A DNA stretch of 64,000 bases from Paramoeba atlantica (taxonomy: Eukaryota > Protista > Discosea): the NCBI GenBank assembly GCA_977017575.1, contig CDRNVI010000088.1, positions 1 to 64,000 of the forward strand. The letters run 5' to 3'. Under the pieces are notes generated by a model. That model searched no databases. It was not told the origin of the DNA and saw only the letters and a list, made by a program, of their open reading frames with translations. Positions 1,232 through 26,383 of this stretch are shown here, one piece after another. Positions within the stretch are counted from its first letter, which is position 1. Every line of letters begins with the position of its first letter. The translations under genes and the position numbers were made by a program.

Positions 1232-1538
1232 GTAGCTACCCGGACGGGCGTCCAACCCCGTTGCATCGTGTAGGCTGTGTCTCAAGCCTTCTTTGCGTAA
1301 GCAGCTCGCATTTAGCGGCTGCGCTGGGGCCTGGTTCGGCGAGGCGGTTCCGGGTCGGTCCTCCAGGGGAGCGGGGTTGGGTGTGGGCCTTGAAGGCACT
1401 ACTGATCGCTTTCCCTTTGTAGTGAGGCCGCCAGGTTGCGAGTTTTGTCGATAGCTGGAATCGAACCCAGAACCTGCAGGTTGTAAGACCCACCGTCTAA
1501 CAACTACGCCCGTACCGCACAACTACGCCCGCACCGCG
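1232..1538 (-). mobile_element. 5' ~290 nt of the tRNA-like SINE (one per array unit)
   Basis: Reverse-complement near-identity to 17037-17325. It contains the B box GGTTCGATTCC, and the 19-nt head is tandemly duplicated. Confidence 0.8.
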
Positions 1539-5767: not shown

Positions 5768-6335
5768 TTTATAAAGATACAGTTTCTGTACCTTGTTGCC
5801 CTTCTTTTCTTTTCCCGGAAACGGGCATACATTTTCCTTTTAAATGCCCGTTTCCGGCTGACGGCTAGCAGGGACTGTCCCTCTTTGTCGTGGAAGTAGG
5901 GGACGTACTTCCGACTTTTCACCCCTCCCCGGCTCACTCCTTGAGTGAGTTTTTTTTCCCTCCCCGGCTTTCTTCTTCTCGCGCCTGTCTCTTCCCGGGA
6001 GCTATGCGCCATGGTGGCCTCCCTTGAGGACCACTGGGCGTGACTCTGCCTCGCATTATCGCGAGGCAGCGGTCGGTTGCAGTGCGCCCCTCCGGCTGCG
6101 TAAAGAGGTGGTGAGTTGCCTGGACCACCTCTACCGACTGGGACCGAGTCGGTTGCAGTACGCCCCTCCGGCTGCGTAAAGAGAGGGCGAGTTGCCTGGA
6201 CCCCCTCTACCGACCGAGTCCGTGTCGAACCCCCTTTGGCGACATCCGTTGTGGGCGGATTATGTGCCGATGATATCGGCCGTCGCATTAAGAGGATTAT
6301 CTCTGCGCCAAAGAGCGCATGATAAACAAACAAAG
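5768..6335 (+). mobile_element. 568-bp SL-headed insertion (copy 2)
   Basis: Near-identical to 2376-2943, offset by 3392 bp. Confidence 0.8.
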
Positions 6336-9159
6336 CGAGGCCGCCGGGAATATTGCGATGAACGGGTTTGAACTCGCCGTCTGAGCACCATGTGCTTCAA
6401 ACTTTGAATTCTTGCCACTCCGCCACCTCCGCCCACTCCGCCACCTCCGCCCTGGTGCCGCCTTGGACAAGAGGAAACTGGTAGAGGACGTCGGCCTCGG
6501 AACTTCCGAATCTGTCTGTGAAGGGTCTGGCTTTCCAGCGACCATCCGGAGCAATCCGGAATGATTTGGATGATGATGATGATGATTTTGGTCACCATCC
6601 CGGTAGCTACCCGGACGGGCGTCCAACCCCGTTGCATCGTGTAGGCTGTGTCTCAAGCCTTCTTTGCGTAAGCAGCTCGCAATTTAGCGGCTGCGCTGGG
6701 GCCTGGTTCGGCGAGGCGGTTCCGGGTCGGTCCTCCAGGGGAGCGGGGTTGGGTGTGGGCCTTGAAGGCACTACTGATCGCTTTCCCTTTGTAGTGAGGC
6801 CGCCAGGTTGCGAGTTTTGTCGATAGCTGGAATCGAACCCAGAACCTGCAGGTTGTAAGACCCACCGTCTAACAACTACGCCCGTACCGCACAACTACGC
6901 CCGCACCGCGCCAGTAATAATGCTCGCCAGTAATAATGTAAGTAATAACCGCCAGTAATAATGTGATGAGCGGGTTTGAACTCGCTGTATGGGCACCATG
7001 TTCTTCAAACTTTGAATTCTTGCCACTCCGCCACCTCACTACTCAACTCAATACACAACTACGCTCTTCTTGGGTGTCTGGTTGGTAAAGTGTTTTGGTT
7101 GCCGTGTTCCAGCGGTTGCTGTTGAAACGTGTGGCGGCCATGCGCTTTGGACTACAGCTTCGTCGTGGGAGATTCGTTCGAATTTTCAAGTCTCTTTAAG
7201 CCGGTGGATAATTGTCTGTATTTCACTTCTGTTGTTCCTCCTATCCTTGCTCATCTTAACGAACACTAGTAAAGAGGGTTTCTTTTACAATGCAAAAACG
7301 CAAACTCACGTACAGTAGTTTTGAAGTGTTTTATTATAAATAATATTACTTGTAACCCTGTGTTTTTTAACTTTAACACAAAGAACATTCTTCCATACTC
7401 TTAAACAGCGATGAACTATCCGTCCGAACGTTCTCAATCCAAAACCGAGACTCTCATCGCCCAAATTCAAAATCCAAATCATTCCGGATTGCTCCGGATA
7501 GTCACTGGCAAGCCAGACCCTTCACAGACAGATTTGGAAGTTCCGAGGCCGACGTCCTCTACCAGTTTCCGCTTTTCCAAGGCGGCACCAACGTGCTGTT
7601 GCCAACACGCTGCGTCGACGAATTGTACGTCAACACGGCCTACCCAAGAGGTGTAAGCCGGGTAAGGGAGCTGGTTCCCTGAGGGGAGGGTCCGGGACGG
7701 TCCTCCGAGTACTGCGCCTAGTCGGTTATCAGCCCAGCCTCTTAGAGCGCGGCCGCCGGGAATATTGCGATGAACGGGTTTGAACTCGCCGTCTGAGCAC
7801 CATGTGCTTCAAACTTTGAATTCTTGCCACTCCGCCACCTCCGCCCACTCCGCCACCTCCGCCCTGGTGCCGCCTTGGACAAGAGGAAACTGGTAGAGGA
7901 CGTCGGCCTCGGAACTTCCGAATCTGTCTGTGAAGGGTCTGGCTTGCCAGCGACCATCCGGAGCAATCCGGAATGATTTGGATGATGATGATGATGATTT
8001 TGGTCACCATCCCGGTAGCTACCCGGACGGGCGTCCAACCCCGTTGCATCGTGTAGGCTGTGTCTCAAGCCTTCTTTGCGTAAGCAGCTCGCAATTTAGC
8101 GGCTGCGCTGGGGCCTGGTTCGGCGAGGCGGTTCCGGGTCGGTCCTCCAGGGGAGCGGGGTTGGGTGTGGGCCTTGAAGGCACTACTGATCGCTTTCCCT
8201 TTGTAGTGAGGCCGCCAGGTTGCGAGTTTTGTCGATAGCTGGAATCGAACCCAGAACCTGCAGGTTGTAAGACCCACCGTCTAACAACTACGCCCGTACC
8301 GCACAACTACGCCCGCACCGCGCCAGTAATAATGCTCGCCAGTAATAATGTAAGTAATAACCGCCAGTAATAATGTGATGAGCGGGTTTGAACTCGCTGT
8401 ATGGGCACCATGTTCTTCAAACTTTGAATTCTTGCCACTCCGCCACCTCACTACTCAACTCAATACACAACTACGCTCTTCTTGGGTGTCTGGTTGGTAA
8501 AGTGTTTTGGTTGCCGTGTTCCAGCGGTTGCTGTTGAAACGTGTGGCGGCCATGCGCTTTGGACTACAGCTTCGTCGTGGGAGATTCGTTCGAATTTTCA
8601 AGTCTCTTTAAGCCGGTGGATAATTGTCTGTATTTTACTTCTGTTGTTCCTCCTATCCTTGCTCATCTTAACGAACACTAGTAAAGAGGGTTTCTTTTAC
8701 AATGCAAAAACGCAAACTCACGTACAGTAGTTTTGAAGTGTTTTATTATAAATAATATTACTTGTAACCCTGTGTTTTTTAACTTTAACACAAAGAACAT
8801 TCTTCCATACTCTTAAACAGCGATGAACTATCCGTCCGAACGTTCTCAATCCAAAACCGAGACTCTCATCGCCCAAATCCAAAATCCAAATCATTCCGGA
8901 TTGCTCCGGATAGTCACTGGCAAGCCAGACCCTTCACAGACAGATTTGGAAGTTCCGAGGCCGACGTCCTCTACCAGTTTCCGCTTTTCCAAGGCGGCAC
9001 CAACGTGCTGTTGCCAACACGCTGCGTCGACGAATTGTACGTCAACACGGCCTACCCAAGAGGTGTAAGCCGGGTAAGGGAGCTGGTTCCCTGAGGGGAG
9101 GGTCCGGGACGGTCCTCCGAGTACTGGGCCTAGTCGGTTATCAGCCCAGCCTCTTAGAG

Positions 9160-9727
9160 TTTATAAAGATACAGTTTCTGTACGTTGTTGCCCTTCTTTT
9201 CTTTTCCCGGAAACGGGCATACATTTTCCTTTTAAATGCCCGTTTCCGGCTGACGGCTAGCAGGGACTGTCCCTCTTTGTCGTGGAAGTAGGGGACGTAC
9301 TTCCGACTTTTCACCCCTCCCCGGCTCACTCCTTGAGTGAGTTTTTTTTCCCTCCCCGGCTTTCTTCTTCTCGCGCCTGTCTCTTCCCGGGAGCTATGCG
9401 CCATGGTGGCCTCCCTTGAGGACCACTGGGCGTGACTCTGCCTCGCATTATCGCGAGGCAGCGGTCGGTTGCAGTGCGCCCCTCCGGCTGCGTAAAGAGG
9501 TGGTGAGTTGCCTGGACCACCTCTACCGACTGGGACCGAGTCGGTTGCAGTACGCCCCTCCGGCTGCGTAAAGAGAGGGCGAGTTGCCTGGACCCCCTCT
9601 ACCGACCGAGTCCGTGTCGAACCCCCTTTGGCGACATCCGTTGTGGGCGGATTATGTGCCGATGATATCGGCCGTCGCATTAAGAGGATTATCTCTGCGC
9701 CAAAGAGCGCATGATAAACAAACAAAG
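9160..9727 (+). mobile_element. 568-bp SL-headed insertion (copy 3)
   Basis: Near-identical to 2376-2943, with one substitution in the SL part (CTGTACGTTGTTG). Confidence 0.8.
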
Positions 9728-10630
9728 CGAGGCCGCCGGGAATATTGCGATGAACGGGTTTGAACTCGCCGTCTGAGCACCATGTGCTTCAAACTTTGAA
9801 TTCTTGCCACTCCGCCACCTCCGCCCACTCCGCCACCTCCGCCCTGGTGCCGCCTTGGACAAGAGGAAACTGGTAGAGGACGTCGGCCTCGGAACTTCCG
9901 AATCTGTCTGTGAAGGGTCTGGCTTGCCAGCGACCATCCGGAGCAATCCGGAATGATTTGGATGATGATGATGATGATTTTGGTCACCATCCCGGTAGCT
10001 ACCCGGACGGGCGTCCAACCCCGTTGCATCGTGTAGGCTGTGTCTCAAGCCTTCTTTGCGTAAGCAGCTCGCAATTTAGCGGCTGCGCTGGGGCCTGGTT
10101 CGGCGAGGCGGTTCCGGGTCGGTCCTCCAGGGGAGCGGGGTTGGGTGTGGGCCTTGAAGGCACTACTGATCGCTTTCCCTTTGTAGTGAGGCCGCCAGGT
10201 TGCGAGTTTTGTCGATAGCTGGAATCGAACCCAGAACCTGCAGGTTGTAAGACCCACCGTCTAACAACTACGCCCGTACCGCACAACTACGCCCGCACCG
10301 CGCCAGTAATAATGCTCGCCAGTAATAATGTAAGTAATAACCGCCAGTAATAATGTGATGAGCGGGTTTGAACTCGCTGTATGGGCACCATGTTCTTCAA
10401 ACTTTGAATTCTTGCCACTCCGCCACCTCACTACTCAACTCAATACACAACTACGCTCTTCTTGGGTGTCTGGTTGGTAAAGTGTTTTGGTTGCCGTGTT
10501 CCAGCGGTTGCTGTTGAAACGTGTGGCGGCCATGCGCTTTGGACTACAGCTTCGTCGTGGGAGATTCGTTCGAATTTTCAAGTCTCTTTAAGCCGGTGGA
10601 TAATTGTCTGTATTTCACTTCTGTTGTTCC

Positions 10631-11041
10631 TCCTATCCTATCCTATAAGACCGATTTGAATCGGTTAAGAACACATCCGTTTTTGTCGTCGCTTCGACGT
10701 CTTTCACTCAGGTGAATTCGCCCTTTCGTGCCCCTTTTTCGCTTAACCGGGCATGCAACTTTGTTTTTTTGGCATCAAATTCTTCAGCACTATTTCCTCA
10801 AATTCCTCAACACTCTTTCAAGAGAATCCACCCCGGCATCCACAGGTGGCGAGGTACCCTTTTTGGAGAGAGAATAACTTTCCACAATCTTGAAGTAATC
10901 CTGTATTTTCCCTAATGGCTTAGGTATTTGGCCACAGTGTTTCCGAGGACGATTCATGGTTTGAAAATCAAAACTCTGTGCAAAGCAAAACGAAACTCAA
11001 TTATCTTCTTTTTTTCATGCACTTGTAGTGCAGCGATTTGT
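10631..11041 (-). mobile_element. 3' fragment of a second (ATAGG)n-tailed retroelement that truncates the array
   Basis: (TCCTA)3 at 10631-10645 on the plus strand joins the array at its own TCCTATCCT. A hairpin at 10650-10665 is homologous to the LINE 3' hairpin. Confidence 0.6.
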
Positions 11042-11093
11042 CTCTACCTTCCTTATCCTATCCTATTAGGCTGACTTGCGTCGGCTGAAAGTA

Positions 11094-14000
11094 CTACTGC
11101 TTCGTTTTTCGTGAAAACGATTTTCTCTTAGGTGAGTCTTCTACCTTGCGACCCACAATCTTGTGTAACTCCCTTGACCCTTTACGCTCTTCGCTCGCTT
11201 CCTTAACACATTCCGCTTCCTGGAGTGATTTTCGGTCTTTTGATGACCCTGTTCCGGTAGATGGTAAAAGCGAGGAACCCTTTTTGGGTGCACGTTCCTC
11301 TGCAGAAGTAGTGTATCCTCGTTTGTTAGATGCAATGGGTATTGTGCCGTCGTTTGCCGGGGTCTTTCGTGTCGGGCGAACGGAAAGACGCAAGTTTTTA
11401 GATTCACGTCGTTGAGAGTCCCGAGCACTCAATGTCTTCATCCTCTTTGTCAACTGAGAAGAAAGAGGTTTCCGTGAAGCAGCGAGAGCCAAAGCGTCAG
11501 CCTTGTCATTGTACGCATTTCCGTTGTGGGCCTTCACCTTACAAACGTAGATTTCAATATTATTGCTTTGAAGAATACGAATCTTTCGATCTAAAAATTC
11601 AAGAAGCTCACCATTCGCCACCTTCTTGTATCCTACTACTCGTTGCCGCATCCTTACGTGATGGAAAAAATTCCACACGTAAAAGGAATCAGTGTGCACC
11701 AACACAACTTCGGATCCCTCAGGTATTCTTTCAAGTGACTCTTTGAAGGATTCTGCCTCAGCTTGTTCTGCTGAGTCAACGTCCAGCCTCAAAGAAGCAT
11801 AATCATCATTCACCCACTTGCGCCTGATCACGATACCCGCCCCCCCTCTGCATTCATTTGTCGCCTTGATATAGCGTACCGAACCATCGGTGTACATGTG
11901 AACTTCCTTTTCCCGAACTGGAAAAATTTCTGAGTTTTCTTCTACAAATTGCAACTCACTAATTGATTCGTGTTTCAGAGCATGGTTATACTTACTCTTC
12001 CATCGCGAAGAGGTGATCCTCTCATAGTCGACCAACGGTTCCAGAGAAAGCCTGAGAGAGTCACATAACTTTTGCCAGTGTTGTCGGTCTTGAGAAAAAA
12101 CGAGGGCTTCTTCAACCGTTATCCCGAGATCATGAAAACATTCCTCGCTAGGAAACATTCGCCTAGCGTTCTCTCTACTTTTCCACTGAAGCAATTCTCG
12201 AAACACTGTTGAGTGACGAATCATGTGACCCACCACCTTTTCCCTGCTTACACGATGGATGGTGTTGAAGCGAGGTTTTCCACGATAGAGAGATTCTAGG
12301 GGATAACAATGACCGAATTCGTCTAGTTTGACATGATTGCAGGCAAATCGTCTCATCATGTTGATTTCAACCTCAGTTTTCCTGACCATAGCATTCGAGA
12401 TTGGTAGAGATGAAATTCCAAAAGTAAGAACAGGATATACCAAACAATCGAACAGGCGGAGCTTAGTGGAGGCGTCAAGGGGTGAGTTCCAAATTCCTTT
12501 GAGACGTCGAAAAGCGGCCCAGGTCAATGCCAATCTATCCTTAACTGGGGAGGAGGCACCGGATTCTTGAAGCTGCCCCAGATACCTGTATTTGTCAACA
12601 TATGGAATTTTGCCCAGGTAGGCCGTTCTGAGCTCCTTTTGTCCACCTGGAACTCTACCAAACCCCATCCATGCTGTTTTCGTCTTGCCTATGGCGATTT
12701 GCAAATTCGCTCTTTGAGACTCCTGAGCCGTGAGGTCAATCATGCGGGAGATCTCACCTTTAGTTGATGCCAATAGAGCGATATCATCAGCATAGTTGAT
12801 GTCTTGTAGCCGTACCTCTTGTAACCCTCTGCTCTTTGTCCCTTGGCTCCTAAGAAGAACCCCAAGGGGCCTGCCGTCCAATGCTCGGTGTAGAATGCGG
12901 TCAACGACAAGAATGAAGAGATAAGGTGCCAAAACGTCCCCTTGAAGAATACCAGTTGTGATTTGAAATGAATTCGTATTTCCATAGGGGGTCCGAACAA
13001 CACCATGAAGACCTCTGTATATAGACATTATGGTTCGCAGCATTGCAGGGCCAACGTGGAAAGCCTGAAGCGCAGCTGAAAAGAGACAGAGGGAAATGCT
13101 TTCGCAAAGTCCAGAAAAGCGACCACCAACCCAGACTTGTCTCGACATGCCCTGGTCTTCACCTCGTTAAGGAGTATTCTCGCGCCGGATGTAGAGCGTT
13201 CTGGGAGAAACCCATACTGACTGTCCCGCAGAATTGGTTCTATGGTCGGTCGAATTCGTTGCAATATCATGCAGTTCATCAACTTAACGATGCTATTAAC
13301 TAAGCATATTGGGCGCCAATTTGCTATTTGAGATAAGCCGCCCTTCTTCGGGATAGGGACTTGAACTACAGTCTTCCAGCATTCAGGGGCAACCCCCGTA
13401 CCTCATTAATAATATCAAGCATCGCTAGCTTAAGTCCACTATGCTCCGAAATAATGCTTATCACTTCAGCCGGTATTGCATCAATTCCTGGAGCTTTATT
13501 TCGTGCAAGTTTAGAAATTCCATGAATAAGCTCCTCTTCCGTAAATGCTCCATCTTGTATTGGAGTTGATGGTTTAACAACATCGTCGAACTGAATTTCA
13601 GAATCCCCTAAGTCGTTGCTACCCATCCTAGAGAAGAAATCTCGGACTACATTCAGAGTCTCTTTGGTAGATGAAGTGTCAGTGCAAAGCTTTGTCCTAT
13701 AAATGCCGCATAGTCTCCGCAAAGTTTGCCATGGATTCGATCTATTTGCTCTAAGGCCTGATTCTATCGCCTCACATTCGCGTGCAATTTGATCCTCGAC
13801 TTGCTTTCCGTGCACTTTCAAAACTTCCTTGAAATGCTCAGGTTGACGACTCTGTAGAAAAATCTGTCGGAAAGTAGAAGGGATACCAATATCCTGTGGC
13901 TCGCTGTCTGTCGTCGCGGCCTCTATTTTACTGCATTCCGAGGAATTGGCTTCTTTTTTTGATGATTCGTCGTGAAATGCCGGAGACTTCGTATTTCGGA

Positions 14001-15552
14001 GAATCTCTTTGCAAGTATGAACCATAACACCAGAGAGGTTTTCCCATGTAGGTATCGATTCCTTTTGTGTTTCTTCCCAGACTTTCTGTTTAAACTTCTC
14101 TCTGTTCTTTTCATCTCTTAGTTTAACCCATGGAACCCATTCAGACCCTGTTGGACGACCCACTCGCCATTTGATATCAATGTCTGCCAAAACAATGCAA
14201 TGCGTTGTAGGCACTGGCGCCTTAAGGACCTTATGCATGCGAATGCTGGACGAAAAACGGCCCCCTACAAGTATGTGGTCAAGTTGTCTTCTAACTCGTG
14301 AACCTTTCCTCTCCGCACCTTTCTCTGAAGAATAACTATTCATTTCTTTATTTTGAGTTGCTTGGCGTTTCTTTTCTGTATCCGATCGTATTTTTCTTTC
14401 GTGTATAGAAGTTGCTCGGTCTCCCCGAAGACAATTCGTGGATCTACAAGGAAGTTCGCATGTCCATTTCCGCCTGCTTGGGCAGAGCAAGTGGGCAGAT
14501 TTGCATCCTATGGCGCACTTAAGACCCTTAAGTTGTGCAGCAGCTGGGGGATCCATTTTTCGATTTACTATGTAGGTTAAAGGTGAATTAAAATCTCCCA
14601 AAACTAAAAGTGGCCTGCGCCTGAGCTTCGACTCAACTTCACTGCAAACTCTTTCCACATCGCCCAGAAAAGCCGCATGGGCGGCTTCAGAGGAGCCCCT
14701 AATGGGAGCATAGGCATTTAAAAGAGCGCCCTTCCCCTCATTGAGATTGATTCTTCTTACCTTCCGCACCCGCGAAAGAACCCGACGACTAACAATTCCC
14801 ATGCCATTATATGAATCCCCCACGTTCGCCGCCTGTAGGTATATGTGAAACGTGCATCCTAGGTTCTCAACTTTTCTGTAGAGCACGCCGTCCTCACAAG
14901 TATCATCAGAAAACTTAAACCTGGTCTCCTGGAGACACAGTAAGTCAACCCCCTTTTCTACCATAAAGGAGAGAATTTCACAAAAGCGTGTGCATCGTCG
15001 GATAGAAAACTCGTCTTCCCCCTCAAGTTTGAGCGTTGTCACGTTAAGTGTTCCTACGGTAGTACTTTCCTTCACAGCGGAACCTCTCGGGTTCTCCGAT
15101 TCTCGTTGGACACGCTTGCCACGCAATGTCCAGGGCTTGCGCGGGCGATGGGAAGCAATTCTTCGTTTCGCTTTTTTCGGGTTACAAACCTCCACTGCGC
15201 AAAGAACTACACTAGTGGAAGAAAAGGGGGGGAACGGCAGCGTTGCGTGAGGACGTTCTTCGTACCTCACACGAAATAAACCCGACAAAGACTCAGACTT
15301 AAGCCTTGCCAGGCATACATCTACAACCCTCCCGCTCCAAAGCGAGAGTTTACTACTAGTTTCGTGTCTCCACACGACACGGATAAAAGCACCCAATCGA
15401 GCGAACTTAAAAATTGCCCTCACCGCCCGCTGGCGGAGTTTAGCAAACTCTCTTCGCTCCGGAGAACGGAAGATAACTCCCCGAACACGCTTGGTTCGGC
15501 AGAAGGTTTCAAGAAGCTCTGTCCCCCCTGCCGCGCCGGAAGCATCCGCCAT
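11094..15552 (-). pseudogene. LINE polyprotein split by two frameshifts (~13395 and ~13085)
   Basis: APE motifs: TLNV, LCLQET, AYAP, LGDFNS, LDHILV. RT motifs: KAPGID, PIPKKG..NWRPICL, SQYGF, LDFAKAF, GILQGDVLAPYLF, YADD, YRYLG. RNase H motifs: YTDGS, AEQAEA, TDS, VKAHNGNAYNDKADALA. Confidence 0.9.
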
Positions 15553-15578
15553 TTTTTTATAAACGAATTTATAAAAAA

Positions 15579-15606
15579 CAACAAGGTACAGAAACTGTAT
15601 CTTTAT
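15579..15606 (-). other. Spliced-leader exon relic (3' 28 nt) 26 nt upstream of the LINE ATG
   Basis: The minus strand reads ATAAAGATACAGTTTCTGTACCTTGTTG. The core GATACAGTTTCTGTAC and the terminal TTG match the kinetoplastid SL exon. No GT intron follows. Confidence 0.85.
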
Positions 15607-16198
15607 CGTTAAAGATACAGTTTTATTTACTTTATTTTAAAGTACTTTACTTTCTATTTACTTTTTTATTTACTTTATTTTAAAGATACAGTATCTTTAT
15701 CGTTAAAGATACTCTTTATCGTTAAAGATACTCTACCTTCCTTAACCGCATGCGGCTGGTGGGTCAAGTGAGCGTTTGCCGTCTTTCGCGGAGTTGGCGC
15801 CCCAGGCGCAGAGAGCTCTGTGTTCATGCGCAGTTCCAGGTATAAGGGTACGTAATCACAATATTACGGTTCCGGGGGCAAGCCGGATGCAGAGAGCTGC
15901 GGCGGAGCCGAGGTACAGAGAGGTGGTCGCCCTACAGGCCCAAGGAGGCGGGCGGAGTACAAGACTCAAGGGCAGCCGCCTTGACGCATAGAGTAAGATG
16001 AAACTGAGGGCTCTGCAGCGTCAACCTTTAGAGTCTCAGCCAAAGACCCTCATTGCCCTCCAAGACAACAACCCTAAAAATCCAAAAACACCGGCTATTA
16101 AAGCCAGTTGAAAAAATGAAAACAACCTTTGCTTACGTTGTGCGAGTGTAGTTGGTGTAGCGGTGGGGGGGTAGCGGTGCGAGTGTAGTTGTTAGACG

Positions 16199-16660
16199 TT
16201 GCTCATCGCCCAGACAGGCAGCCAGTATTTTGTCACACGTGGAAATGACATACGATGCACTCTTTGCGACGTCATAGTGCCATGTAGAAGGTTATCACAC
16301 CTTTTGAATTTGAAAACTCACAAATCGAAATCTGCGACAGCAAAATTTCAGTCCAAAAATGAGAAGATCATCGCCCAGACAGGCAGCCAGTATTTTGTCA
16401 CACGTGGAAATGACATACGATGCACTCTTTGCGACGTCATAGTGCCATCTAGAAGGTTATCACACCATTTGAATTTGAAAAAGCACAAAGTGAAACCTTC
16501 GACACCAAATTCTGAGCCCACAAACGAGAAACTCATCGCCCAGACAGGCAGCCAGTGTTTTGTCACATGTGGAAATGATATACGGTGCACTCTTTGCGAC
16601 GTCGTAGTGCCATCTAGAAGGTTGTCTCAGCAACTAACTTTGGATAGGCATAGAAAATGC
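16199..16660 (+). repeat. Three 165-bp coding repeats, each a CxxC...H/H (U1/matrin-like) zinc finger
   Basis: IAQTGSQYFVTRGNDIRCTLCDVIVP.RRLSH.LNLK.HK occurs three times. Confidence 0.75.
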
Positions 16661-17036
16661 CTTGCTAGGGCACCAGGTTACTGTGATTTAGGTTTTTTCT
16701 TTGGGAATAAATCTGTTCCAATGGGTACAGAAAGTGGTCAATCTATGGAATTAATGGATAGCGAAAGTGAAGGCACCGAGGGCAACAACTTGGAACAAAA
16801 CGCTGAGAACAGCCCGAAAGAGGCAGTACTAAATTTTCTCAGGGAATCACCGCATTTTCCTCGTCGGTGGGATCAAATTATTGACCCTTGCTCAAACAAC
16901 AAGAAATCAGAAATATTGAGCGATTTTAAAAAACATAACGAAAATTTAGAGCCGTACGAATGTGGATCCTGTGGCATTTTGCAAGCGTCACACATAGCTT
17001 TGAAACTCATTGATTTGTCGTGTTGTAGTGTTTTTC

Positions 17037-17460
17037 GCGGTGCGAGCGTAGTTGTTAGACGGTGGGCCTTACAACCTGCAGGTTGTGGGTTCGATTCCCG
17101 CTATCGACAAAACTCGCAACCTGGCGGCCTCACTACAAAGGGAAAGCGACCAGGAGTGCCTTCAAGGCCCACACCCAACACCGCCCCCCTGGAGGACCGA
17201 CCCGGAACCGCCTCGCCGAACCAGGCTCCAGCGCAGCCGCTAAATTGCGAGCTGCTTACGCAAAGAAGGCTTGAGACACAGCCTACACGATGCAACGGGG
17301 TTGGACGCCCATCCTGGTAGCTACGGTTGGGTAGCCGTTCTCGGGCCGCGAGGCGTCGAGTGCCGTCTGGGAAGGGGGTAGCAAGACGATGAAGGTCGGT
17401 GACCTGAGACTCTACCCTAACGGTTGGCGCTGCAGAGCCCTCCGTCAAACAAAAAAAAAA
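17037..17460 (+). mobile_element. tRNA-like SINE with poly(A) tail and 9-10 bp TSD, inserted in the Helitron ORF
   Basis: TSD (A)GTGTTTTTC at 17027-17036 and 17460-17469. The tail is AAACAAAAAAAAAA and the B box is GGTTCGATTCC. Removing the insert restores the frame CSVFQAADF. Confidence 0.9.
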
Positions 17461-17688
17461 GTGTTTTTCAGGCTGCAGATTTTGAAAATAAAAGCATTAC
17501 ACATGTAGCGAAAGCATGTCAAAATTATCACCACGTGAATTCTGAGCTTCTTGAAGGCACGAAAATACCGGTTTGTGACATCTGCTTTGAACAAGCATCA
17601 AAAGGAAAGGTTCCGAAGTATTCATACAAGTCTGGTTGGGATTTTGGTCTTCCGTTATCTCGTCTTGATCTACCAAAATTAACTATCA

Positions 17689-20604
17689 TTGAAAGATCCT
17701 CCATTTGTCGGGTTTTACATTTCCAAACACTGTGAAGTTCGACACGAAAAGAGTTTTGCAGGCACGCGCTTCAAACGGCATATAATATCATTTGTTTCCT
17801 CAGGAGCAGAAACAGTGGCACAGGTTCTTCCTGTAACGGAGCAACGTGTGTTCGTTACGTTTGTTGGTGAAAACATCAAGGAAAAAGCTTTGATCAACCC
17901 TTCCTTTAGAGCATATTTTGAAGTACGCCCACACGTTGTGAAGAAATGGTTAATATTTCTGAAGAAAAATAATGTGTTTTATCATGATATCATCATATCC
18001 GACGTGAACATTGATAATCTGGCCTCTTCATGCCATGGTATTTTGAATTTAGCTTCGACTGTAAACAACCCCGCGTCGGTAGCCGCTTCCTTTCTCGCCC
18101 ATAACCAGGCGCAATCAAATACCGAAGCCGACGATGAAGATGTTTTGCTACTTAACAGTCACCGCGTAGAAGATCCGGGGCAAGCTTTGGTAGATGGTGT
18201 TACAGGTTTGCTTGAGAAAAAAGAACACGTTTCTTCTTGCAGAAGCCGAATAAAAATTTATGCTAATGCAGCCAATGAGTTTTCGGAAAACCATCTAATT
18301 CTTGGGATGGGGTATCCTGATCTTTTCCCCGTTCTTTCAAATGATTCAGCTAACTTACCTAAAACGCCCTTGACACCATCAGGTGGACTGAGGCATCTTC
18401 TTCTTCAATCTGATTCAAGATGGTGCAGAAGTAGCAATTTCGGTTACTTTCATTTTGACCAAATCAGACGACATTCACTTGCTAGAAATGTGAAGGCGAA
18501 ACCAAGCATGTGGGAAAGAGCAAGATCTTTATTGAAGCGAAAGAATTTATTGGAAAATTTGCGCGCAGCCTTAAAAGATCCACTTGACACGGAAGGTAAT
18601 AAACTCTTACATGAGTCAATGCAGGTTCTCCACATAATAACTCGGAACATTCATTTTTCAGATGCTTCACGCAATGCGTGTTTTAACGACATGGTTGCGA
18701 TGCATTCATTCATGGGATACGGCGCCCTGTATATTACAATATCTCCGTGCGACCCGGATATGAAACTAACATTGAAATATTTAGATAAATGCAGCACAGG
18801 CGTTACGGAAAGCATGCTTATTAAAAATCCTGATCTGAGAGTTCAAGAAGTTAAGAACCACCCTGCATATTGCGCAAACACGTTCAATTTAATGATCCAC
18901 GCTGTGATCAAGCAATTGTTTGGAATTCAACTTTCCAGTTCGTACAAAAAAAGTGGACAGCAACAATCGTTAGATACCTCTTTTAAAACCGAGACGCCAA
19001 ACGGTATTTTCAATTTTTCTAAAGGTCTTTTTGGTGTCGTGGAAACTCAAGGTCGCGGGAGCTTGCATATGCACATGCTTCTTTGGGGTATTCCAGTCTC
19101 AGATTATCTGTCTGAAAATCTTTCTAGTAAAGGTAAAAGAGAACAAATTTGCAATCTTGCATCGGATTACATGACGGTTAGTGTGCCTCGTGAGGGTTTT
19201 GAGCACGACGTATTAAACAAAGTACGGGTGGGTCTTCAGAATTGTCCCAGCTTCGAAGACACTTCAGGAATGCTTTTGAGAGAGTTCTTAGTTGCTTCCA
19301 CGGTCCAAAATCATATCTGCACAGAAATGTGTTTTAAAAATCGTCAGTTTTTGCCCCTAAAGTGCAGGTACGCATACCCACGCCAGCCGTTTCAAGGCGG
19401 CAACTTGTATCTGTTAGAATGCGCGGATGGTGACTTTAAAAATATCAAAGCTTCCCTGCTAACCGACGCCAACTTGCCAAGTCTGCCAAATATATCCAAA
19501 ACATTCTTTAATTATCCTTCATTAGACCTCCGACCTATTGCATACTTTCCAAAAAGAAGCGAGAAAGATGTAAACATTGCCGAATATAACAGCCTGTTGT
19601 CCTGCGCACTCGGTTGCAATACAAATGTCGTACTTCTTGCTTCGCCGTGCACTGCAGCTATTACTATTTTTTACTTGTTCAAATACTTGTCAAAGAATCT
19701 TCTGGACGTGAGTGGTTGTTTAGGAGTAATCCATACAGCGAAAGAGAAAGAAAAATATGAAGGAAAGGGGGGGGACACCAACGCTGCCGATATTCTTATG
19801 TGCAATAGGCTAGGGAATGCTCAACTTGGAATACAAGAAGTATCATCACAGCTTGCGATGTATTGCTGTTTGGGGTATAGTGCGGAAGAACGCAGCCATT
19901 TGACCCCATACTTGAATGTTCAACAAGCGATTCAGCTAATGACGCGCGGTGCTAAAGAAAAACCAGTCAATGATAACGTCGAGCCAGAGGAATCCGATAA
20001 TGAGGATTACGAAGAAGTGGCCTTCGAAGTATTTCTAAATGACGACGGCTCCCCTGAATTATGTAGCAAAGCAACGGATTACTACTATAGAGGGCCTGAA
20101 CTTGCATTCTTGAATTTATATATCTATGCAGCAATAATTGTTCGAGTTCGTGCAGCAAGGGTTAAAACTAAAAGAACACGCGGAAGGCATAAAAACGCTT
20201 GTTTTTCGTTTATGAAGAATCATCCCTTAGCTACCAGTTTTGTTCAACAAATTCGAAGCAAGTTTGTTTTACCTTCTCCTGGATATACATGTATACCTCA
20301 TTGGTCACAACATTCGTACTCCATCGAAAATTCAACCTCTGGATTTTTACGACGTGCAAAATATCACGCAAAGTATTTTTCTGCACTGTTCTGTCCCTTT
20401 TCGGAAGACGTCGAAATCGGTTATGACATAGAAAGTTGGAAAACGTATTTGAAAACACTTAAAAAATATTCGCAACCTGATGAAGCATTGGCTGGTCTTC
20501 CATCGGAGGTTTACGCAACGCTTTTGAAAATTATTAATAATATGCGAATTGGGGTACAAGACAGTGCTTTTGAAGAGCCCAGAAATCTAATAAATCGATT
20601 TTAA
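17689..20604 (+). pseudogene. Helitron Rep (HUH endonuclease) segment
   Basis: Helitron-type motifs YFEVRPHVVKKWLIFLK, YPDLFP, HLLLQSD, ETQGRGSLHMH, VQNH, CRYAYP, EYN..L..ALGCNTNV, YLFKY. Confidence 0.88.
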
Positions 20605-20662
20605 AGCTACTGAATTTAGCGAATGGTGCAATAAAATCGATAAAACAACTGTTGGAAACGTC

Positions 20663-23224
20663 ATGTATTCATCGAATTGCTCTGAGAGAGAAGCTCTAGA
20701 AGGTATAAAAGAGGCTGAAGAAATGCTTTCAATACAACAATCTGAAATAAAACGGAGTGGAAAAAGGAAAAACGAACATGAAACTGAGTTATTTTTGGCA
20801 GGGCTTGAGAAACAAGTGTCCAAGCTAATCAAAGACAAATGTGAGTTACATTCACAAAAAAGCTGCAAAACAGATGGGAATATAATTCAACGCTCTCAAC
20901 TCTCAAAATCAATTTTAAAAAGCCATATAATATTTGTGACCAAAGGTAAATCAGGACGTTTGGCTGTAAATGCACCCGTGGCCCATACAAAAAACGATGT
21001 CTTTGATGCGAAACAAGGTGAAGTCGATTTGAATCAAAGCCCTTTTTCCGCCACTGAGTCCCCTACCCCACTGCATTGCGCAGGATTCAAAGATGCGTTA
21101 AATAATGCAAAGCGAATCCTTCAGAGTCGTCCAAAAGAAAAGGCACTTGATTCAAAGCAGGGGCAATTTGTGCTCCAAACAATGCAACAAACGGAGATAC
21201 ATCGCGACTTGGATGATGGGTATCTTGTTTTTCTTCACGGTGGGCCTGGTACTGGAAAAAGCGAAACGTGCCGTTGTTTAATGGAGGCAAAATTGTTGCA
21301 CCGACCTGGTTCAATCTTGGCCTTTGGGTACTCCGGATATTGTGCAGTTAATGTGTTGGGGGAAACAATTCACTCAGGATTCGCATTTCCGACAGCTTGG
21401 TAGCTTGGAAAACGCAAGGAAAATACATTCACATCATATTTAAATGTTGAAAGACTGGCAAAACTACGAAAAAAGTTTTCCGGTGTGGACACAATAGTTA
21501 TTGACGAAGCGTCGTGCGTTTCGACGAAGATGTTATGGCAAGTTCATGAGCGCTTATGTTGCATATCGAACAAAGAAATAAAATTTGGCGGATTTTCCAT
21601 CATAATGGTCGGTGATTTTTATCAGCTACCCCCTGTTAGGACATCAGGATCGTCGCTGATATATGGAGCCTCTTCCTCCGCGCACTCGAAAACCATTGGT
21701 ATTAATGACTTTTGCTTTTTCGATTTGACAGAGCAACATCGAGCAGTAGGTACTTCGCAAGAAGATGTAATGCATCAAGAAATGCTTAAAGATCTTCGAG
21801 ATCCCGATAAATGCGCCACTGCATTCAAAAATCTATTACAACGAGCCCAATTTGTTACGGAAAGTATTCCGGATAACGCGTTTATGCTTGAGAGTACAAA
21901 TCAAGAACGTGAAATACTGTCATTACTCAGGAGCAGAGAATTCGCCCTTACAAAAGGAATTCCTGTTTTAAAAGTTTCTATTAAAGGGGCTCAATACTTT
22001 TCTGTAACAGGAAAACCGACAATGTGCCTTGCCAATCTCAGTAGGGAGAATAGGCTCATAAACGGCACCCTGATGGAGGAGGATGGGGTGCTGGTTGGAA
22101 ATGAAAATGAAAAAGCACGCTTAACAAAATACGTAAAAGAAAACGGAAGAGCTGGCGAAATTTTAGATTGTACTTCCTTTGCAATTGTAGGAATAGCAGC
22201 AACAACAATCGACGGCAGAGTGTCAGCCGAATTTAAGAAAAGCGACCTGGATGATGAACTAGAAATTGGCTGCGGATTCTCATTCACGATACACAAAGTC
22301 CAAGGGGCCACAATTAACAATAATTTGTGTATTGACCTCAACTGAAGACCAACAAGCTACCGCAAAAGCATGCTAACACACTCAGCCGTGTACGTAGCAT
22401 TGTCGAGAGTAAAATCTGCAAAATTACATTGGTTATTGCCGGAAAGGTGTGAAGGAAGTTTTTCTTACTTGGAAAAGCTCCGACCCAACCCAGACTTGAT
22501 AGAATTCGTAAACGAGATGAAACGCAAGGGCGATAAAACAGTTTACATTCCTCAGAAAAGAACTTTAAAAACAGAATCTACAAAAAATCAACAGAGAGCG
22601 ACCAAGAAAAAGAAGACAGTAGTTCAGTGCCCGGCGGAACGTATTCCAAGGAAATCTTCAGATATGAAACCAATAATACAGACGCCCCCGCCTTGGTCAT
22701 ACACAGGGCAGCTTATCCCAGACACTGTTGTAAATACATTGGGTTCCTTGCTCTCAGAGGAATGCCGCGGATATGTGGTACTCGACAGCTCCGTTCCTTC
22801 TACGGTGTTTAAAAAATTTGTGGATAGCAATTCAAGCATAGGTGGAGAGATAAGGACAAGAATGCTTGAAGCTAACCGGATTGCTATGCCTTTTTACTTC
22901 GACTGCCATTTTGCTGTATGCTTAGCGTTCCCAAATGAAAAACGAGACGGAGGTGACCTACCGTGGTTTGATTCCCTTCCACTTCATAGCCCAAAAAGGC
23001 GAAACGAAATTTTAAGTTCGATAAAAGCTTCCATGATAGACATTTTTGGGGGGAGCAACATGACTTGGAAGTTATTTCCTGGATATGATCTGACTCAGAG
23101 TAATGGTTCGAATGACTGTGCGCTGTTTGTCTGCCGGTGGTTGTTACATTTTTCGAGAAATACTTCAATAGAAATTCCAATGGAATTAACAAGAGAAGAA
23201 TTAGCACGACTAGTGTCTAAATGA
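20663..23224 (+). pseudogene. Pif1 helicase plus C-terminal Ulp1/SENP-like protease segment, with in-frame TAG (21401-21403) and TGA (22343-22345)
   Basis: The three track ORFs are in one frame, separated only by single stops. All Pif1 motifs and the protease H/D/C triad are recognisable. Confidence 0.85.
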
Positions 23225-23339
23225 GCTGTTCATGCAGCTTGGGGTAATGACCTTTCTCATTAACTTACATTTTTTTTTCATTAACTTACATTTTTGTGAG
23301 CTATCTGTCTGCCGTCGATTTTTGAAAAAAAAGTGAACA

Positions 23340-23533
23340 AACCCAGGCTAAAGTGGACGAGGGAGATACTAAAAACACCTCAGGCAAACCACCACAAAAA
23401 TGCAACAGTATCTCCCGTTAAAGATTCTTTTGTCCCATCAGAATCCTTTACAAATCGGGAGATACCGTTGCATTTTTGTGGTGGTTTGCCTGAGGTGTTT
23501 TTAGTATCTCCCTCGTCCACTTTAGCCTGGGTT
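23340..23533. repeat. Fold-back with perfect 67-bp arms (plus a further 10 bp)
   Basis: 23340-23406 is the exact reverse complement of 23467-23533. The inner GTATCTCCCG/CGGGAGATAC also pairs. Confidence 0.95.
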
Positions 23534-23588
23534 ATATTACCGTGTTCTTCTTTATATTTTCACTGTTTTTATTCAGTTATTTGTTCCA

Positions 23589-23765
23589 TTCCGTTTTCTT
23601 CAGCTTTCCAGGCAAAAGTTTCTTTTTTAGGCTCTTGGTTAAATGCTGTGGTAGTTTTCAACGCGAAGCGCGCAGCATGAGTGACTTCTAAGTTGAAAAC
23701 TACCACAGCATTTAACCAATAGCCTAAAAAAGAAACTTTTGCCTGGAAAGCTGAAGAAAACGGAA
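23589..23765. repeat. Fold-back with 74-bp arms (1 mismatch) and a 29-bp loop
   Basis: 23589-23662 versus 23692-23765. Confidence 0.95.
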
Positions 23766-24388
23766 AGATCATAGCCAAAAATGGCCGATTTTCGGGTGAA
23801 AATGGGGTGATTTTTTTGAAATACTTTTTCGCATGTTTTACTCAAAAATGGATCATATTGGGTGGCATACCAAGGCTCGAAGAAGGGGTGTCTGGTAAGA
23901 GCAACTGCGGAGAAAGCTAGTATAGATCCCAAAATGCAACAGGAGAAATGATTTCGAAAAAATATTGTTTTTGCCATTTTTGCTTGTGAAAACGTGTTAA
24001 AACGCTTACCCCCGGAGCCCCCCAACATGCAGACACCCACCCCCTACCCTCTATACGCCCCCTGTGGGGCTCCCGAGCCAAATCTTTCTTACTGGGGGTC
24101 AGCCCAAAAAGGGCCAAATCTCTCTTACTGGGGGGCGGTATCTTACTGGGGGGGTATACGGTATTGTATTACTGTGTACCTCTTTATATTTTCACTGTTT
24201 TTGTTCACTTTTTTTTCAATAATCGAGGGTAGAGCGGTAGTTATACAACCACAGCAATATTTTGTTGTTCACTGCTTTGTCAAGTTCTCTCTTTTATGAC
24301 AGAAAAGGGGGTGGACGTCATGTGCCTTCATCTGGTGGTACCTTCGTCTGGTGGTACTTAAGTTTTTATGGAATAGAGATGGATCGAT

Positions 24389-26383
24389 TTAGTAGTCCAT
24401 AAATTGTTCCTTCTCGTCAGTTCTTTCCGAAGAAATTTCTTTTCGAAATTGTTTTTCGATCTCGCTGACAATTATTTTCCCCATTAATACCGTTGGGATT
24501 GGTTCGTGCAGATTAATGCGGACCATATCTGTGGTAAGTCCCATTGGCTCCCCCAAAAGAAAGTCTGTAAACAACCCCATGTGCTTCGTGTAGCGCTGAG
24601 AGAAGTGAGTAAATAGAGAAAATTTAGCTTTCATTGCACGCGCCACATCTATTGCTTCTGTTATTGTAGAATGAAACTTTGAATGAGCATCTTCCTGTTC
24701 TGAGGGAAGAAATGTAGCTTCATGAATAAGCCAATCTGCGTCCTTTCCTGCATTAATGAGAGTAGAGCATGGACGAGTATCTCCCGAAAAAACAAATTTT
24801 CTTCCATTCAAAGAAAGTACGAATCCGTACGAATCGGAAGGATGAAGAACTCGAACGCAGTGTAACCAATTCGTAACTATTCCTCCATTTCGAGGAAGAG
24901 AAAGACACTTGATTGTTTCTGTACGGCTAGTCCATATACTTATGTGATTCAAACAGCAGGATGCGTACGCTAACATCGAAGGGGGAAGAAAGAGAGTGAT
25001 GCTGGGAGATGATTGTCCGTTAAGACCTTTGTAGAGTATTTCAAAAAGGAAGCTCCAAAGACCAAAATGATGATCTGCATGTCCATGAGTGCAAAGAATC
25101 GCAATTTCATCGGCCCATGACATAAAAGGTTTAATATCGTACATGCGGCGCAACTGCCCGAGGCTACCTTCTCCGCAGTCTATTATAACAATGTATCTTT
25201 TGTGGTTGAACTCAAATAGAAGAAGATTACACGTCACGTTCCGAAACACCGAGGGAACCGCGCAACCGGAACCCAATATCAAAAGAACAGGACCATGACA
25301 CAGTCCTGTATGCCCCTTTGCAACACTCAATGTCAGGCTATCAGAAAAGGTTGTACCATTCTTTTCCACTGAAAATAAACCAGATTCCACGTAGGATTCT
25401 GACGGGACTGTTTTCTTTTTCCTAGAGGAATGAAATATATATCGTAGGCCTGGTTTCATCCAATACCATTGTGGGGAATCTGAGAAAGCTTCATGATCGT
25501 GTTTAAAGGCAACTTGAAAATGGGTCCGAGGAAAGCTGAGGGGGTCAAGTGAATGCAGTCTACGATGTACAATGTCGGAGTCTCGAAAGCAGCTGTGCCA
25601 CGTAGAAGGGTCTAGACGCCACCTAGTCGAGGAAGCGAAATGAATACTTGGTTCGCTCGCTATATTATACTTAGTGTCGATTGATAGAGTAATGTTCATA
25701 TTTTGAACCTGTGCTACAAGCTTAGGAATATATCCATGATAAATTAGAGCATGTTGCACAGGATCCGGACGTCCCAACACTTGATGCGGATGCACCATAA
25801 AATCGGGACGCTCATCACTTTGAACGCTGCATCCCGTTTTCAACAGACTATACTTCGGTCCTGGTAAAACTCCAAGAGCTTTTGCGGCAGAAACGTTGAA
25901 GGTCCCTGCTCGAGCAGGAATCTCAATCAGTAGAGGGCATATGCCGTATGGCCACTGAGTGGTGGAAGATTCTCCTGTAGAGAGAAACTGAAACCTAACT
26001 TTGTCATCAGCATAAACTGTTTCGGTAAACTTCACCCCCAAAGGGCGCTGTACGTTTTGTAAAGCAAAGGAACAGGCCTCCCACCAAGCCTCCGCAGCCA
26101 CTCGAGTGGAGACATTGCTACATAGCACGATGAGATCTCTGTGCTCGGTTGCTACTTCGCAAAGTGTGATGTACAGACCAGGCAGTCCAAAAATACAACC
26201 TGGGCACATACAGGGGAGAATCACAACGCGTAGACGTCCGTTGTGAGCCAAGTGATGGTGTCTCTCGGCGCAATAGCGCTGTGTACCTTCCGGGCAATAT
26301 ATCAAATAGTAAGCGTTTTCTATGGTAAAGAGAAGGGGAGGCACCGCATTAGGTGTATCCGTTCCCAGACACACAACTGACAT
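24389..26383 (-). CDS. tRNase Z (long form, ELAC2/Trz1-like)
   Basis: PEGTQR, GSGCAVPSVFRNV, DCGEGSLGQL, THGHADHHFGL, HPSDSYG, SGDTRP, IHEATF, HST..EA, THFSQRY. Confidence 0.92.
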   Translation of the reverse strand: MSVVCLGTDTPNAVPPLLFTIENAYYLIYCPEGTQRYCAERHHHLAHNGRLRVVILPCMCPGCIFGLPGLYITLCEVATEHRDLIVLCSNVSTRVAAEAWWEACSFALQNVQRPLGVKFTETVYADDKVRFQFLSTGESSTTQWPYGICPLLIEIPARAGTFNVSAAKALGVLPGPKYSLLKTGCSVQSDERPDFMVHPHQVLGRPDPVQHALIYHGYIPKLVAQVQNMNITLSIDTKYNIASEPSIHFASSTRWRLDPSTWHSCFRDSDIVHRRLHSLDPLSFPRTHFQVAFKHDHEAFSDSPQWYWMKPGLRYIFHSSRKKKTVPSESYVESGLFSVEKNGTTFSDSLTLSVAKGHTGLCHGPVLLILGSGCAVPSVFRNVTCNLLLFEFNHKRYIVIIDCGEGSLGQLRRMYDIKPFMSWADEIAILCTHGHADHHFGLWSFLFEILYKGLNGQSSPSITLFLPPSMLAYASCCLNHISIWTSRTETIKCLSLPRNGGIVTNWLHCVRVLHPSDSYGFVLSLNGRKFVFSGDTRPCSTLINAGKDADWLIHEATFLPSEQEDAHSKFHSTITEAIDVARAMKAKFSLFTHFSQRYTKHMGLFTDFLLGEPMGLTTDMVRINLHEPIPTVLMGKIIVSEIEKQFRKEISSERTDEKEQFMDY

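Follow-up and report, generated by a model that had tools for sequence, protein, structure and literature searches.

What is the broken coding region at positions 16196-23224 (plus strand) of contig CDRNVI010000088.1, and does it belong to the genome in which it lies? The window analysed here is the 64,000-nt stretch at positions 1 to 64,000 of that contig (assembly GCA_977017575.1). An earlier note, made from the letters alone, had read the region as a rolling-circle transposon of the Helitron2/Helentron group with a SUMO-protease domain in a kinetoplastid. We find that window ~16196-23535 is very probably a dead copy of a Helitron2-like, endonuclease-less HLE2 rolling-circle transposon in the genome of a kinetoplastid-like euglenozoan. 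Six open stretches, following each other in three frames, fill the coding region (16196-23224, plus strand) and are confirmed as one former reading frame for zinc fingers, DUF6570, an HUH Rep domain, a Pif1 helicase and a C-terminal cysteine-protease-like domain. In all searches the window pieces were used one by one and never joined across the breaks. The parts of the frame are as follows.

15747-16195, plus strand: upstream DNA, common to a second copy on contig L001 (~98% identity); its assignment to the element is not established
16003-16053 (inverted) and 16140-16201 (direct): fragments in the upstream DNA derived from a short interspersed nuclear element (SINE)
16196-17036, plus strand: open reading frame (ORF) piece 1, three C2H2-like zinc-finger repeats of 165 bp in tandem, followed by a region with 36% identity to residues 112-190 of the relative P0136
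16203-16697: the zinc-finger repeats, CTLCDV...H...H, 3 x 165 bp; motif read directly
17037-17459, plus strand: tRNA-like SINE within the ORF, 423 bp, with a poly(A) tail and the target-site duplication (TSD) GTGTTTTTC
17460-17732, plus strand: ORF piece 2, CxxC and the first part of DUF6570; closed by a 2-bp deletion after 17730
17571-17588: CxxC motif VCDICF; read directly
17683-20601, plus strand: ORF piece 3, the remaining DUF6570 and then the HUH Rep; closed by an 8-bp deletion after 20601
19054-19074: HUH motif RGSLHMH; read directly
19669-19695: two-tyrosine motif FYLFKYLSK (core YLFKYLSK); read directly
20594-21400, plus strand: ORF piece 4, linker and start of the Pif1 helicase; closed by an in-frame TAG at 21401-21403
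21239-21262: Walker A motif GGPGTGKS; read directly
21404-22342, plus strand: ORF piece 5, Pif1 core (VIDEAS, GDFYQLPPV, TIHKVQG); closed by an in-frame TGA at 22343-22345
22286-22306: TIHKVQG; read directly
22346-22681, plus strand: helicase motif VI and a poorly conserved basic linker (linker 15.5% identical to the sister family)
22391-22411: helicase motif VI, YVALSRV; read directly
22682-23224, plus strand: Ulp1/SENP-like (CE-clan) cysteine-protease-like domain, with the natural stop TGA at 23222-23224

Pfam searches identified AKAP95/C2H2-like zinc fingers in the first piece and Helitron_like_N at nt 18391-19083 (E=4.1e-19). DUF6570 is split over two pieces in the window (E=5.4e-10 and 4.6e-4) and matches with E=1.2e-19 in L001, where the frame is unbroken. 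PIF1 matched on both sides of the TAG, weakly in the fourth piece and with E=1e-11 in the fifth. The anatomy set out in the earlier note (zinc fingers, CxxC, HUH Rep, Pif1 and C-terminal domain) is accurate, since the motifs can be read directly, and the profile check that it proposed found both Helitron_like_N and PIF1. The frame has no start codon at its 5' end, nor is there one in the upstream DNA at 15747-16195, and Rfam gave no match within the window.

An unbroken counterpart of the frame exists in a related family from the same sample. The C-terminal piece retrieved P0129 (408 aa, contig L003; 45% identity), in which the helicase end and the protease-like domain lie in one ORF, and P0129's 90% cluster contains P0136, an intact 2124-aa ORF at L004:6500-12874 of the same metagenome assembly. 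P0136 carries a zinc finger, DUF6570 (residues 237-371), Helitron_like_N (496-723), PIF1 (1428-1589) and the same C-terminal domain, so that one continuous ORF holds Rep and then Pif1. The window pieces align to it colinearly, with the following identities.

N-terminal region: 36%
DUF6570: 43%
Rep: 51%
inter-domain region: 42%
helicase: 64%
C-terminal piece: 45%

The ~2200-aa polyprotein that the earlier note obtained by repairing the frame thus has a natural equivalent, and the search for intact copies that the note proposed ends with P0136 in this sister family. The nearest relative outside is P0002, a 1588-aa metagenomic protein with 27-30% identity. The sister family occurs on at least six contigs and its ends are defined by comparison of L003 with L004; no empty site was found for it. 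On L004 the sister element spans 2928-15447 (~12.5 kb). In order, it comprises 3.6 kb on the 5' side, in which units of 27 bp and 67 bp are repeated in tandem, then the 6.4-kb ORF, then a G+C-rich repeat of 112 bp that bears a palindrome and occurs ~17 times, and last a 207-nt hairpin. With its 2124-aa frame and ~12.5-kb element, P0136 looks intact and could still be active.

Two natural relatives, L001 and P0136, show that the SINE and the four lesions counted in the earlier note (two frameshifts and two stops) are real. L001 is a 10,984-bp contig of ENA assembly ERZ24900291, found by a word search with the Rep piece (P0001); it is 99.1% identical to window 17460-23287 and the contig ends at the point that corresponds to window 23287. 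The SINE at 17037-17459 is absent from L001, where positions 5148-5157 are an exact empty site with one copy of GTGTTTTTC. Both deletions, of 2 bp after 17730 and of 8 bp after 20601, are found in the window only, and the TAG at 21401-21403 and the TGA at 22343-22345 are common to window and L001. The TAG falls between PIF1 profile positions 80 and 85 and the TGA between helicase motifs V and VI; at these sites P0136 has codons for Ser and Arg. L001 has damage of its own, namely a nonsense change (at window 19352) and a 1-bp deletion (at window 23048). With a SINE, two frameshifts and two nonsense codons in the frame, no start codon and no 5' terminal motif, the window copy cannot act. Reassignment of the stop codons was considered and rejected because neither the ORFs of the host nor the intact 2124-aa relative require read-through, and because the stops stand at the relative's Ser and Arg.

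L001 and the window copy may be two loci or one. The 99.1% identity of L001 could be that of an independent, recently transposed copy, and its far-left flank does differ from the window's, a retroelement with RVT_1 and RNase_H genes lying there in place of the tandem array. Closer in, however, the two share ~520 bp to the left of the element (including a 5'-truncated retrotransposon fragment with its (CCTAT)n tail and 104 bp of array unit), and both have the same two nonsense codons and lack the 5' motif. L001 also matches window 10533-11055 and then runs straight into 15747; it is the empty site of a 4.7-kb minus-strand retrotransposon at window 11056-15746 (TSD CTCTACCTTCCTTA). What distinguishes L001 from the window is a set of insertion polymorphisms: the SINE, this retrotransposon and the number of zinc-finger repeats. 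An independent recent copy is therefore unlikely, and the common flank, the two shared nonsense codons and the missing 5' end are most simply explained if L001 is the other haplotype or a strain variant of one locus rather than a fresh transposition, a reading we hold with fairly high confidence. It follows that the window's family is probably known from one locus only; an exact-protein look-up for more copies of it returned only L001.

Two further observations concern this pair. The 165-bp zinc-finger repeat has three copies in the window (16203-16697) and four in L001 (4161-4820), and P0136 has a single finger. Differences between window and L001 are unevenly spread: ~35 of them (1.1%) fall in 17460-20601, and one indel of 1 bp is all that 20602-23287 shows. 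Such a pattern could come from gene conversion, from a recombinant haplotype or from mixing in the assembly.

Which class of rolling-circle element does the frame represent? DUF6570 has been described in the HELIANO survey as specific to HLE2, which comprises Helitron2 and Helentron, and was proposed there as a marker against canonical Helitrons (PMC11417382). By Pfam, neither the window pieces nor L001 nor the intact P0136 has an Exo_endo_phos or AP endonuclease domain; an Exo_endo_phos ORF at 13366-15552 lies on the other strand and is part of the retrotransposon. From the presence of DUF6570 and the absence of the AP endonuclease, the element is classed on its predicted domains as an endonuclease-less, Helitron2-like HLE2 and not as a Helentron proper. 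Membership in canonical Helitrons (HLE1) or in Helentrons proper would also be compatible with Helitron_like_N and PIF1, which occur in all groups, and our placement is read from domains and ends. That alternative nevertheless appears very unlikely to us: DUF6570 is present at 1e-19, Exo_endo_phos is missing from every piece and from P0136, and the sister-family ends, an inverted 11-nt motif and a 3' hairpin ending in CTGGGTT(A), are not of the form 5'-TC...CTRR-3'.

Assignment to the Helitron2/Helentron (HLE2) group of rolling-circle RepHel elements, as the earlier note had it, is thus upheld on DUF6570, Helitron_like_N and PIF1. The note had further stated that a GS-type Rep motif 2 and a C48 protease characterise this group. 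As to the first half, the HUH motif Q(G/A)RG(S/N)LHxH, together with YL(F/T)KYL(S/T)K, is shared with the other DUF6570-bearing relatives retrieved. The second half finds no support: the typical HLE2 proteases are given as OTU, UCH and Herpes_teg_N, and Peptidase_C48 is listed only among many captured domains, mostly in ORFs separate from RepHel (PMC4067079, PMC11417382). OTU, and not C48, is the protease typical of Helentrons. A phmmer search of the PDB with the Rep piece matched no chain.

The C-terminal stretch reads ...CHFAV..., ...WFDSL... and ...QSNGSNDCALFVC..., and includes four residues of catalytic type on the plus strand.

22907-22909: His, in ...CHFAV...
22970-22972: Asp, in ...WFDSL...
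23096-23098: Gln
23117-23119: Cys

Compared with the sister family, the helicase tail of the C-terminal piece is 64% identical, the linker 15.5% and the protease domain 49%, and H, D, Q and C are invariant between two lineages that are only 49% identical in the domain. A five-sequence profile searched against 177,635 PDB sequences had human SENP1 as its best match (E=0.055), and in the alignment the four residues fall on VHW, YYDS and QQMNGSDC of SENP1, which we take to be its catalytic His, Asp, oxyanion Gln and Cys. For the sister family, Pfam gave sub-threshold matches to ElaD/SseL-like_C (E=0.002, CE clan) and to Peptidase_C48 (E=0.012, profile positions 26-178 of 217). When compared by language-model features, the domain has 30 nearest Atlas clusters of which 28 belong to Peptidase_C48 (score 0.96), and the best Foldseek matches of a low-confidence model are SENP5, Den1, Ulp1, SENP1 and SseL (TM ~0.3). 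These data point with good confidence to a predicted Ulp1-like protease of the CE clan (Ulp1/SENP-like). The comparison with the catalytic domains of human SENP1 and yeast Ulp1 covers the order and alignment of His, Asp, Gln and Cys as well as, in the low-confidence model, a predicted helix that begins at the Cys and a strand that carries the His; the domain differs from them in being only ~15-19% identical, with E=0.055 and no confident fold model.

Several results weigh against a protease. Peptidase_C48 (PF02902) reaches 15.9-16.2 bits in the sister family against a gathering score of 20.7, so that membership in the Pfam C48 family is not reached, and the window's own C-terminal piece has no Pfam protease match even at E<=10. 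The domain profile, run against 1.84 billion representatives, returned this organism's own fragments only. Two AlphaFold models are poor (pLDDT 45 and 52), and a structure-only search independent of Foldseek produced only noise-level matches to GNAT. These points would suit another conserved alpha/beta domain, for example an acetyltransferase-like fold or a binding module, in which H, D, Q and C stand in this order by chance: no Pfam match passes threshold, no relatives outside this organism appear among the 1.84 billion representatives, the models are of low confidence, and the structural search lists GNAT acetyltransferases at Z ~5 with one desumoylase only, at rank 12. Yet Z ~5 is the stated noise range of that search, the four catalytic-type residues are invariant at 49% domain identity, and four approaches that are not fully independent (two sub-threshold Pfam families, SENP1, 28 of 30 Atlas neighbours, and Foldseek) point to the CE clan. 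We therefore regard a non-protease domain as improbable and retain the Ulp1-like assignment. Of the earlier note's claim of an Ulp1-like protease with H, D and C intact, the residues stand, with H, D, Q and C aligned to SENP1; the C48 profile search that it proposed gave a match below threshold in the sister family and none in the window piece. A two-sequence profile found no protease among the PDB sequences, and no Ulp1 domain was detected in a pogo-like element on L003 that was searched as a local reference.

Where does the element end? The sister family allows the ends to be defined. L003 holds a member of the L004 family with an internal deletion, in which 3931-5415 corresponds to L004 2895-5812 and 5416-7480 equals L004 11589-15447 at 98.7%. 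At the 5' end the L003/L004 homology starts with TTGAGGGAGATACGGAGTATC, preceded by ...TA, and L006 and a second element on L003 open in the same way. At the 3' end, homology stops exactly where a perfect 207-nt hairpin ends, ...GTATCTCCCTCGCCCCTTTCAATCTGGGTTA. In its outer arm this hairpin carries GTATCTCCCTC, of which the 5' GAGGGAGATAC is the inverse. The sister ends are thus a short inverted terminal motif and a 3' stem-loop as in HLE2, with a stem ~10x longer than described (PMC4067079, PMC11417382). They read TTGAGGGAG... and ...CTGGGTT(A) with a ~200-nt hairpin, unlike the 5'-TC...CTRR-3' ends, 16-20-nt hairpin and A-T target of canonical HLE1. The flanks of the sister family show ...TA on the left and A, C or G on the right, and the T-T insertion site of HLE2 is not evident in them. 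The end features are as follows.

terminal motif pair: 5' TTGAGGGAGATAC; 3' ...GTATCTCCCTCG...CTGGGTT
23340-23533, plus strand: window 3' hairpin, 194 nt, 78-nt arms 99% complementary, 38-nt loop

The window hairpin lies 116 bp past the stop codon and has a DNA fold of -101 kcal/mol (z -26 against shuffles). Its outer motif, ...GTATCTCCCTCGTCCACTTTAGCCTGGGTT, agrees with the 3' end demonstrated for the sister family, and the hairpin ends in ...CTGGGTT followed by A. Position 23533-23535 is on this comparison probably the 3' end of the window copy. Two facts speak against this placement: L001 stops at window 23287, before the hairpin, and other copies of the window's hairpin type share the DNA downstream of it and not the DNA upstream. 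Upstream of the ORF, the 5' terminal motif is absent in both window and L001. Lacking both this motif and a start codon, the window copy is 5'-damaged or truncated. Between 10533-16200 and 23222-24390 there are no terminal inverted repeats of at least 11 nt.

Behind the 3' hairpin, window 23534-24261 holds a spacer, a second hairpin (23589-23765, 177 nt, with 99% complementarity between its arms) and additional repeats. Next after a near-copy of the spacer at 24164-24214 comes ATAATCGAGGGTAGAGC, which resembles the 5' motif. The DNA downstream of the hairpin consists of dispersed repeats, 76-97% identical (L004 15445-15703, L005 and L006), which follow the L004 hairpin and not the L003 hairpin. 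These repeats may be a short non-autonomous hairpin element that follows the Helitron in head-to-tail order, an arrangement also present in L004.

The architecture of the element can be compared with three known kinds. Like HLE2 elements without endonuclease (Helitron2-type; Bao and Jurka; Thomas et al. 2014, PMC4067079; HELIANO, PMC11417382), it has a single RepHel ORF with an N-terminal zinc finger, DUF6570, HUH Rep and Pif1, no AP endonuclease and, in the sister family, a short inverted terminal motif and a 3' stem-loop. It differs from them in that RepHel is fused in frame to the Ulp1-like protease, the 3' stem-loop is a near-perfect fold-back of 194-207 nt rather than the 5-20-bp palindromes described, the sister element is ~12.5 kb long with extended tandem-repeat tracts, and the host belongs to a lineage in which Helitrons were reported absent. 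With Helentrons (HLE2 subgroup b) it shares the RepHel backbone and the carriage of a deubiquitinase-type cysteine protease, which is thought to aid transposition; however, Helentrons have a C-terminal AP endonuclease of their own, absent here, and their protease is an OTU in a separate upstream ORF, whereas the domain here is of CE-clan (Ulp1-like) type and fused behind the helicase. A fusion of Ulp1 to a transposase has been described in Ginger1, and Ulp1 domains are encoded by Mutator elements (PMC2836005). Ginger1 and Mutator/KI-MULEs likewise carry a C-terminal Ulp1 (C48) domain on the transposition enzyme, with a proposed role in transposition or host modification, but they are DDE cut-and-paste elements whose Ulp1 passes Pfam, and ours is a rolling-circle RepHel with a domain below the C48 threshold. 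The kind of element is thus already known; what is new is the in-frame fusion of RepHel with an Ulp1-like domain, the giant hairpin end and the host lineage.

Does the element belong to this genome? From 24.4 kb onward the window contains ~25 intronless ORFs on the minus strand with short spacers.

past 24.4 kb, minus strand: host genes for tRNase Z, MCM7, adaptin, V-ATPase C, pol beta, PRMT, Mak16 and a Tc-38-domain protein

The best named matches of MCM7 are trypanosomatids (40-42% identity), and two ENA genomes match at 56-58%. A quick maximum-likelihood tree of MCM7, on which the window has a very long stem and which includes neither diplonemid nor bodonid references, places it with trypanosomatids and environmental sequences (SH-aLRT 97), apart from the euglenid and other eukaryotes. 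A spliced-leader relic in the window has the core GATACAGTTTCTGTAC, which is identical to that of trypanosomatid leaders; in the literature the exact leader variant was not found, only the trypanosomatid core. Gene clusters of Diplonema papillatum are described as 'not particularly tightly spaced' (PMC10161547), unlike the tight spacing seen here. The host is thus kinetoplastid-like, and likely a member of Kinetoplastea, with a diplonemid-like or deeper lineage as the remaining alternative.

Three observations concern the host genes themselves. MCM7 (39837-42197, minus strand) sits on a very long branch together with the two ENA genomes and its amino-acid composition deviates from the rest of the alignment. 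The G+C content of 40-42 kb, where it lies, is 0.65 compared with ~0.45 around it. An ARAGORN call of tRNA-Ser(tga) at 31263-31337 (minus strand) lies inside a carnosine N-methyltransferase-like ORF (30690-31835; Pfam CARME 1.9e-89) and is probably a false positive.

Continuity of the contig from the repeat-rich part to this gene cluster is judged indirectly, from sequence context. A chimeric contig, or an element that came from another organism (prey, host or co-assembled eukaryote), might be suspected in a metagenome-style assembly whose repeat-rich 1-24 kb is unlike the gene cluster in content; the contig names are, we assume, of metaMDBG type. Four links make such an origin very improbable. 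A retrotransposon headed by the kinetoplastid-type spliced-leader relic (GATACAGTTTCTGTAC core) has inserted, with TSD, a little upstream of the element, into DNA that L001 also has. The terminal motif recurs at 44425-44454 between genes of the host cluster. One SINE family is represented within the element itself, in the 1-10.6 kb array and also on L003 and L005. Sister copies are placed on five additional contigs amid other DNA transposons and a host SRP19 gene; this SINE and the hairpin repeats likewise occur on five contigs besides the window's, one of them with the SRP19 gene. G+C is continuous at 0.40-0.47 over 16-30 kb, without a break. On this indirect evidence the element very probably belongs to this genome. 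At 44422-44484 there is, besides, a solo Helitron-type terminal arm (GTATCTCCCTCGTCCACTTTAGCATGGGTT) with a conserved tail (GCATAGCCATCGAA...) in an unusually long spacer between two host genes, and the same junction of arm and tail recurs on L003 and L005.

In a survey of 57 genomes no class II elements were found in trypanosomatids, and Merlin is cited in Bodo and Perkinsela (PMC12278014), which agrees with the background given in the earlier note. Helitron transposases were not found in kinetoplastids (PMC8788227), and ORFs resembling Helitron proteins are mentioned for Diplonema papillatum (PMC10161547). The note's description of a lineage unreported for kinetoplastids is therefore sound as regards the reported absence of Helitron transposases, and less so as regards the host, which is a likely kinetoplastid not established at class level. 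The note had also considered horizontal acquisition from a host or prey, for which we find no evidence. Two lineages with ~51% Rep identity share the fusion and the end design within one genome, and this suggests long residence rather than recent horizontal transfer.

The following mechanism is drawn from the family and not from the window copy. A single former gene would have encoded a ~2150-2200-aa polyprotein with C2H2-like zinc finger(s), DUF6570, HUH Rep, a Pif1-type 5'-3' helicase, a basic linker and a divergent Ulp1/SENP-like protease. Rep would cut a single strand at the 5' terminus (for the sister family, at TTGAGGGAGATAC or directly beside it) and become tyrosine-linked to that strand, and the helicase would peel the nicked strand off. 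The ~200-nt 3' fold-back, which carries the inverted 5' motif (GTATCTCCCTC), could mark the second cleavage and the strand transfer. The fused protease may trim SUMO-like or ubiquitin-like modifiers from host or element proteins and so favour transposition or escape from silencing; alternatively, it may process the polyprotein.

More tentatively, at a likelihood that we put somewhat short of even, these data may describe a Helitron2-type lineage native to a protist on the kinetoplastid side, in which RepHel and a very divergent SUMO-protease-like domain form one protein, the 3' hairpin has grown to a ~200-nt perfect fold-back with an inverted 5' motif, and at least one member (P0136) looks intact and could be active. 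If so, rolling-circle transposons would extend to the kinetoplastid side of Euglenozoa, a point of relevance to the timing and manner in which the lineage leading to the parasites lost its class II elements. The RepHel-Ulp1-like fusion would add a rolling-circle case to the recurrent pairing of transposases with ubiquitin- or SUMO-like proteases, known so far with OTU, UCH and tegument-type proteases in Helentrons and with Ulp1 in Ginger1 and Mutator. The giant hairpin end with its inverted 5' motif would also offer a naturally occurring case in which to test the way that termination signals of Helitrons are read. The window copy itself is only a fossil, and adds a second, decayed family that can be compared with the intact relative.

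The element is surrounded by other repeats. Window 1-10639 is filled by a tandem array whose higher-order unit measures 3392 bp (1412 + 1980 bp); one unit is 99.6-99.9% identical to another, and the array contains no Helitron terminal motif. Each unit includes one copy of the SINE and a 119-124-nt inverted repeat with a 274-nt spacer; the SINE copies, in every array unit (1-10.6 kb) and also on L003 and L005, are 92-96% identical. At 10640-11055, in both window and L001, there is a 5'-truncated fragment of the same kind of retrotransposon as the adjacent 4.7-kb minus-strand copy at 11056-15746, which has an Exo_endo_phos ORF, an (ATAGG)n tail and a 5' spliced-leader relic and is empty in L001 at 3693-3706. 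The contigs that carry sister copies include other DNA-transposon genes (L005 1046-6366, L006 6803-7924 and L003 8313-9239), with the domains DDE_Tnp_IS1595 (Merlin-like), DDE_Tnp_4 (PIF/Harbinger-like), DDE_3 (Tc1/mariner-like) and DDE_1 (pogo-like). Class II elements are plentiful in this genome.

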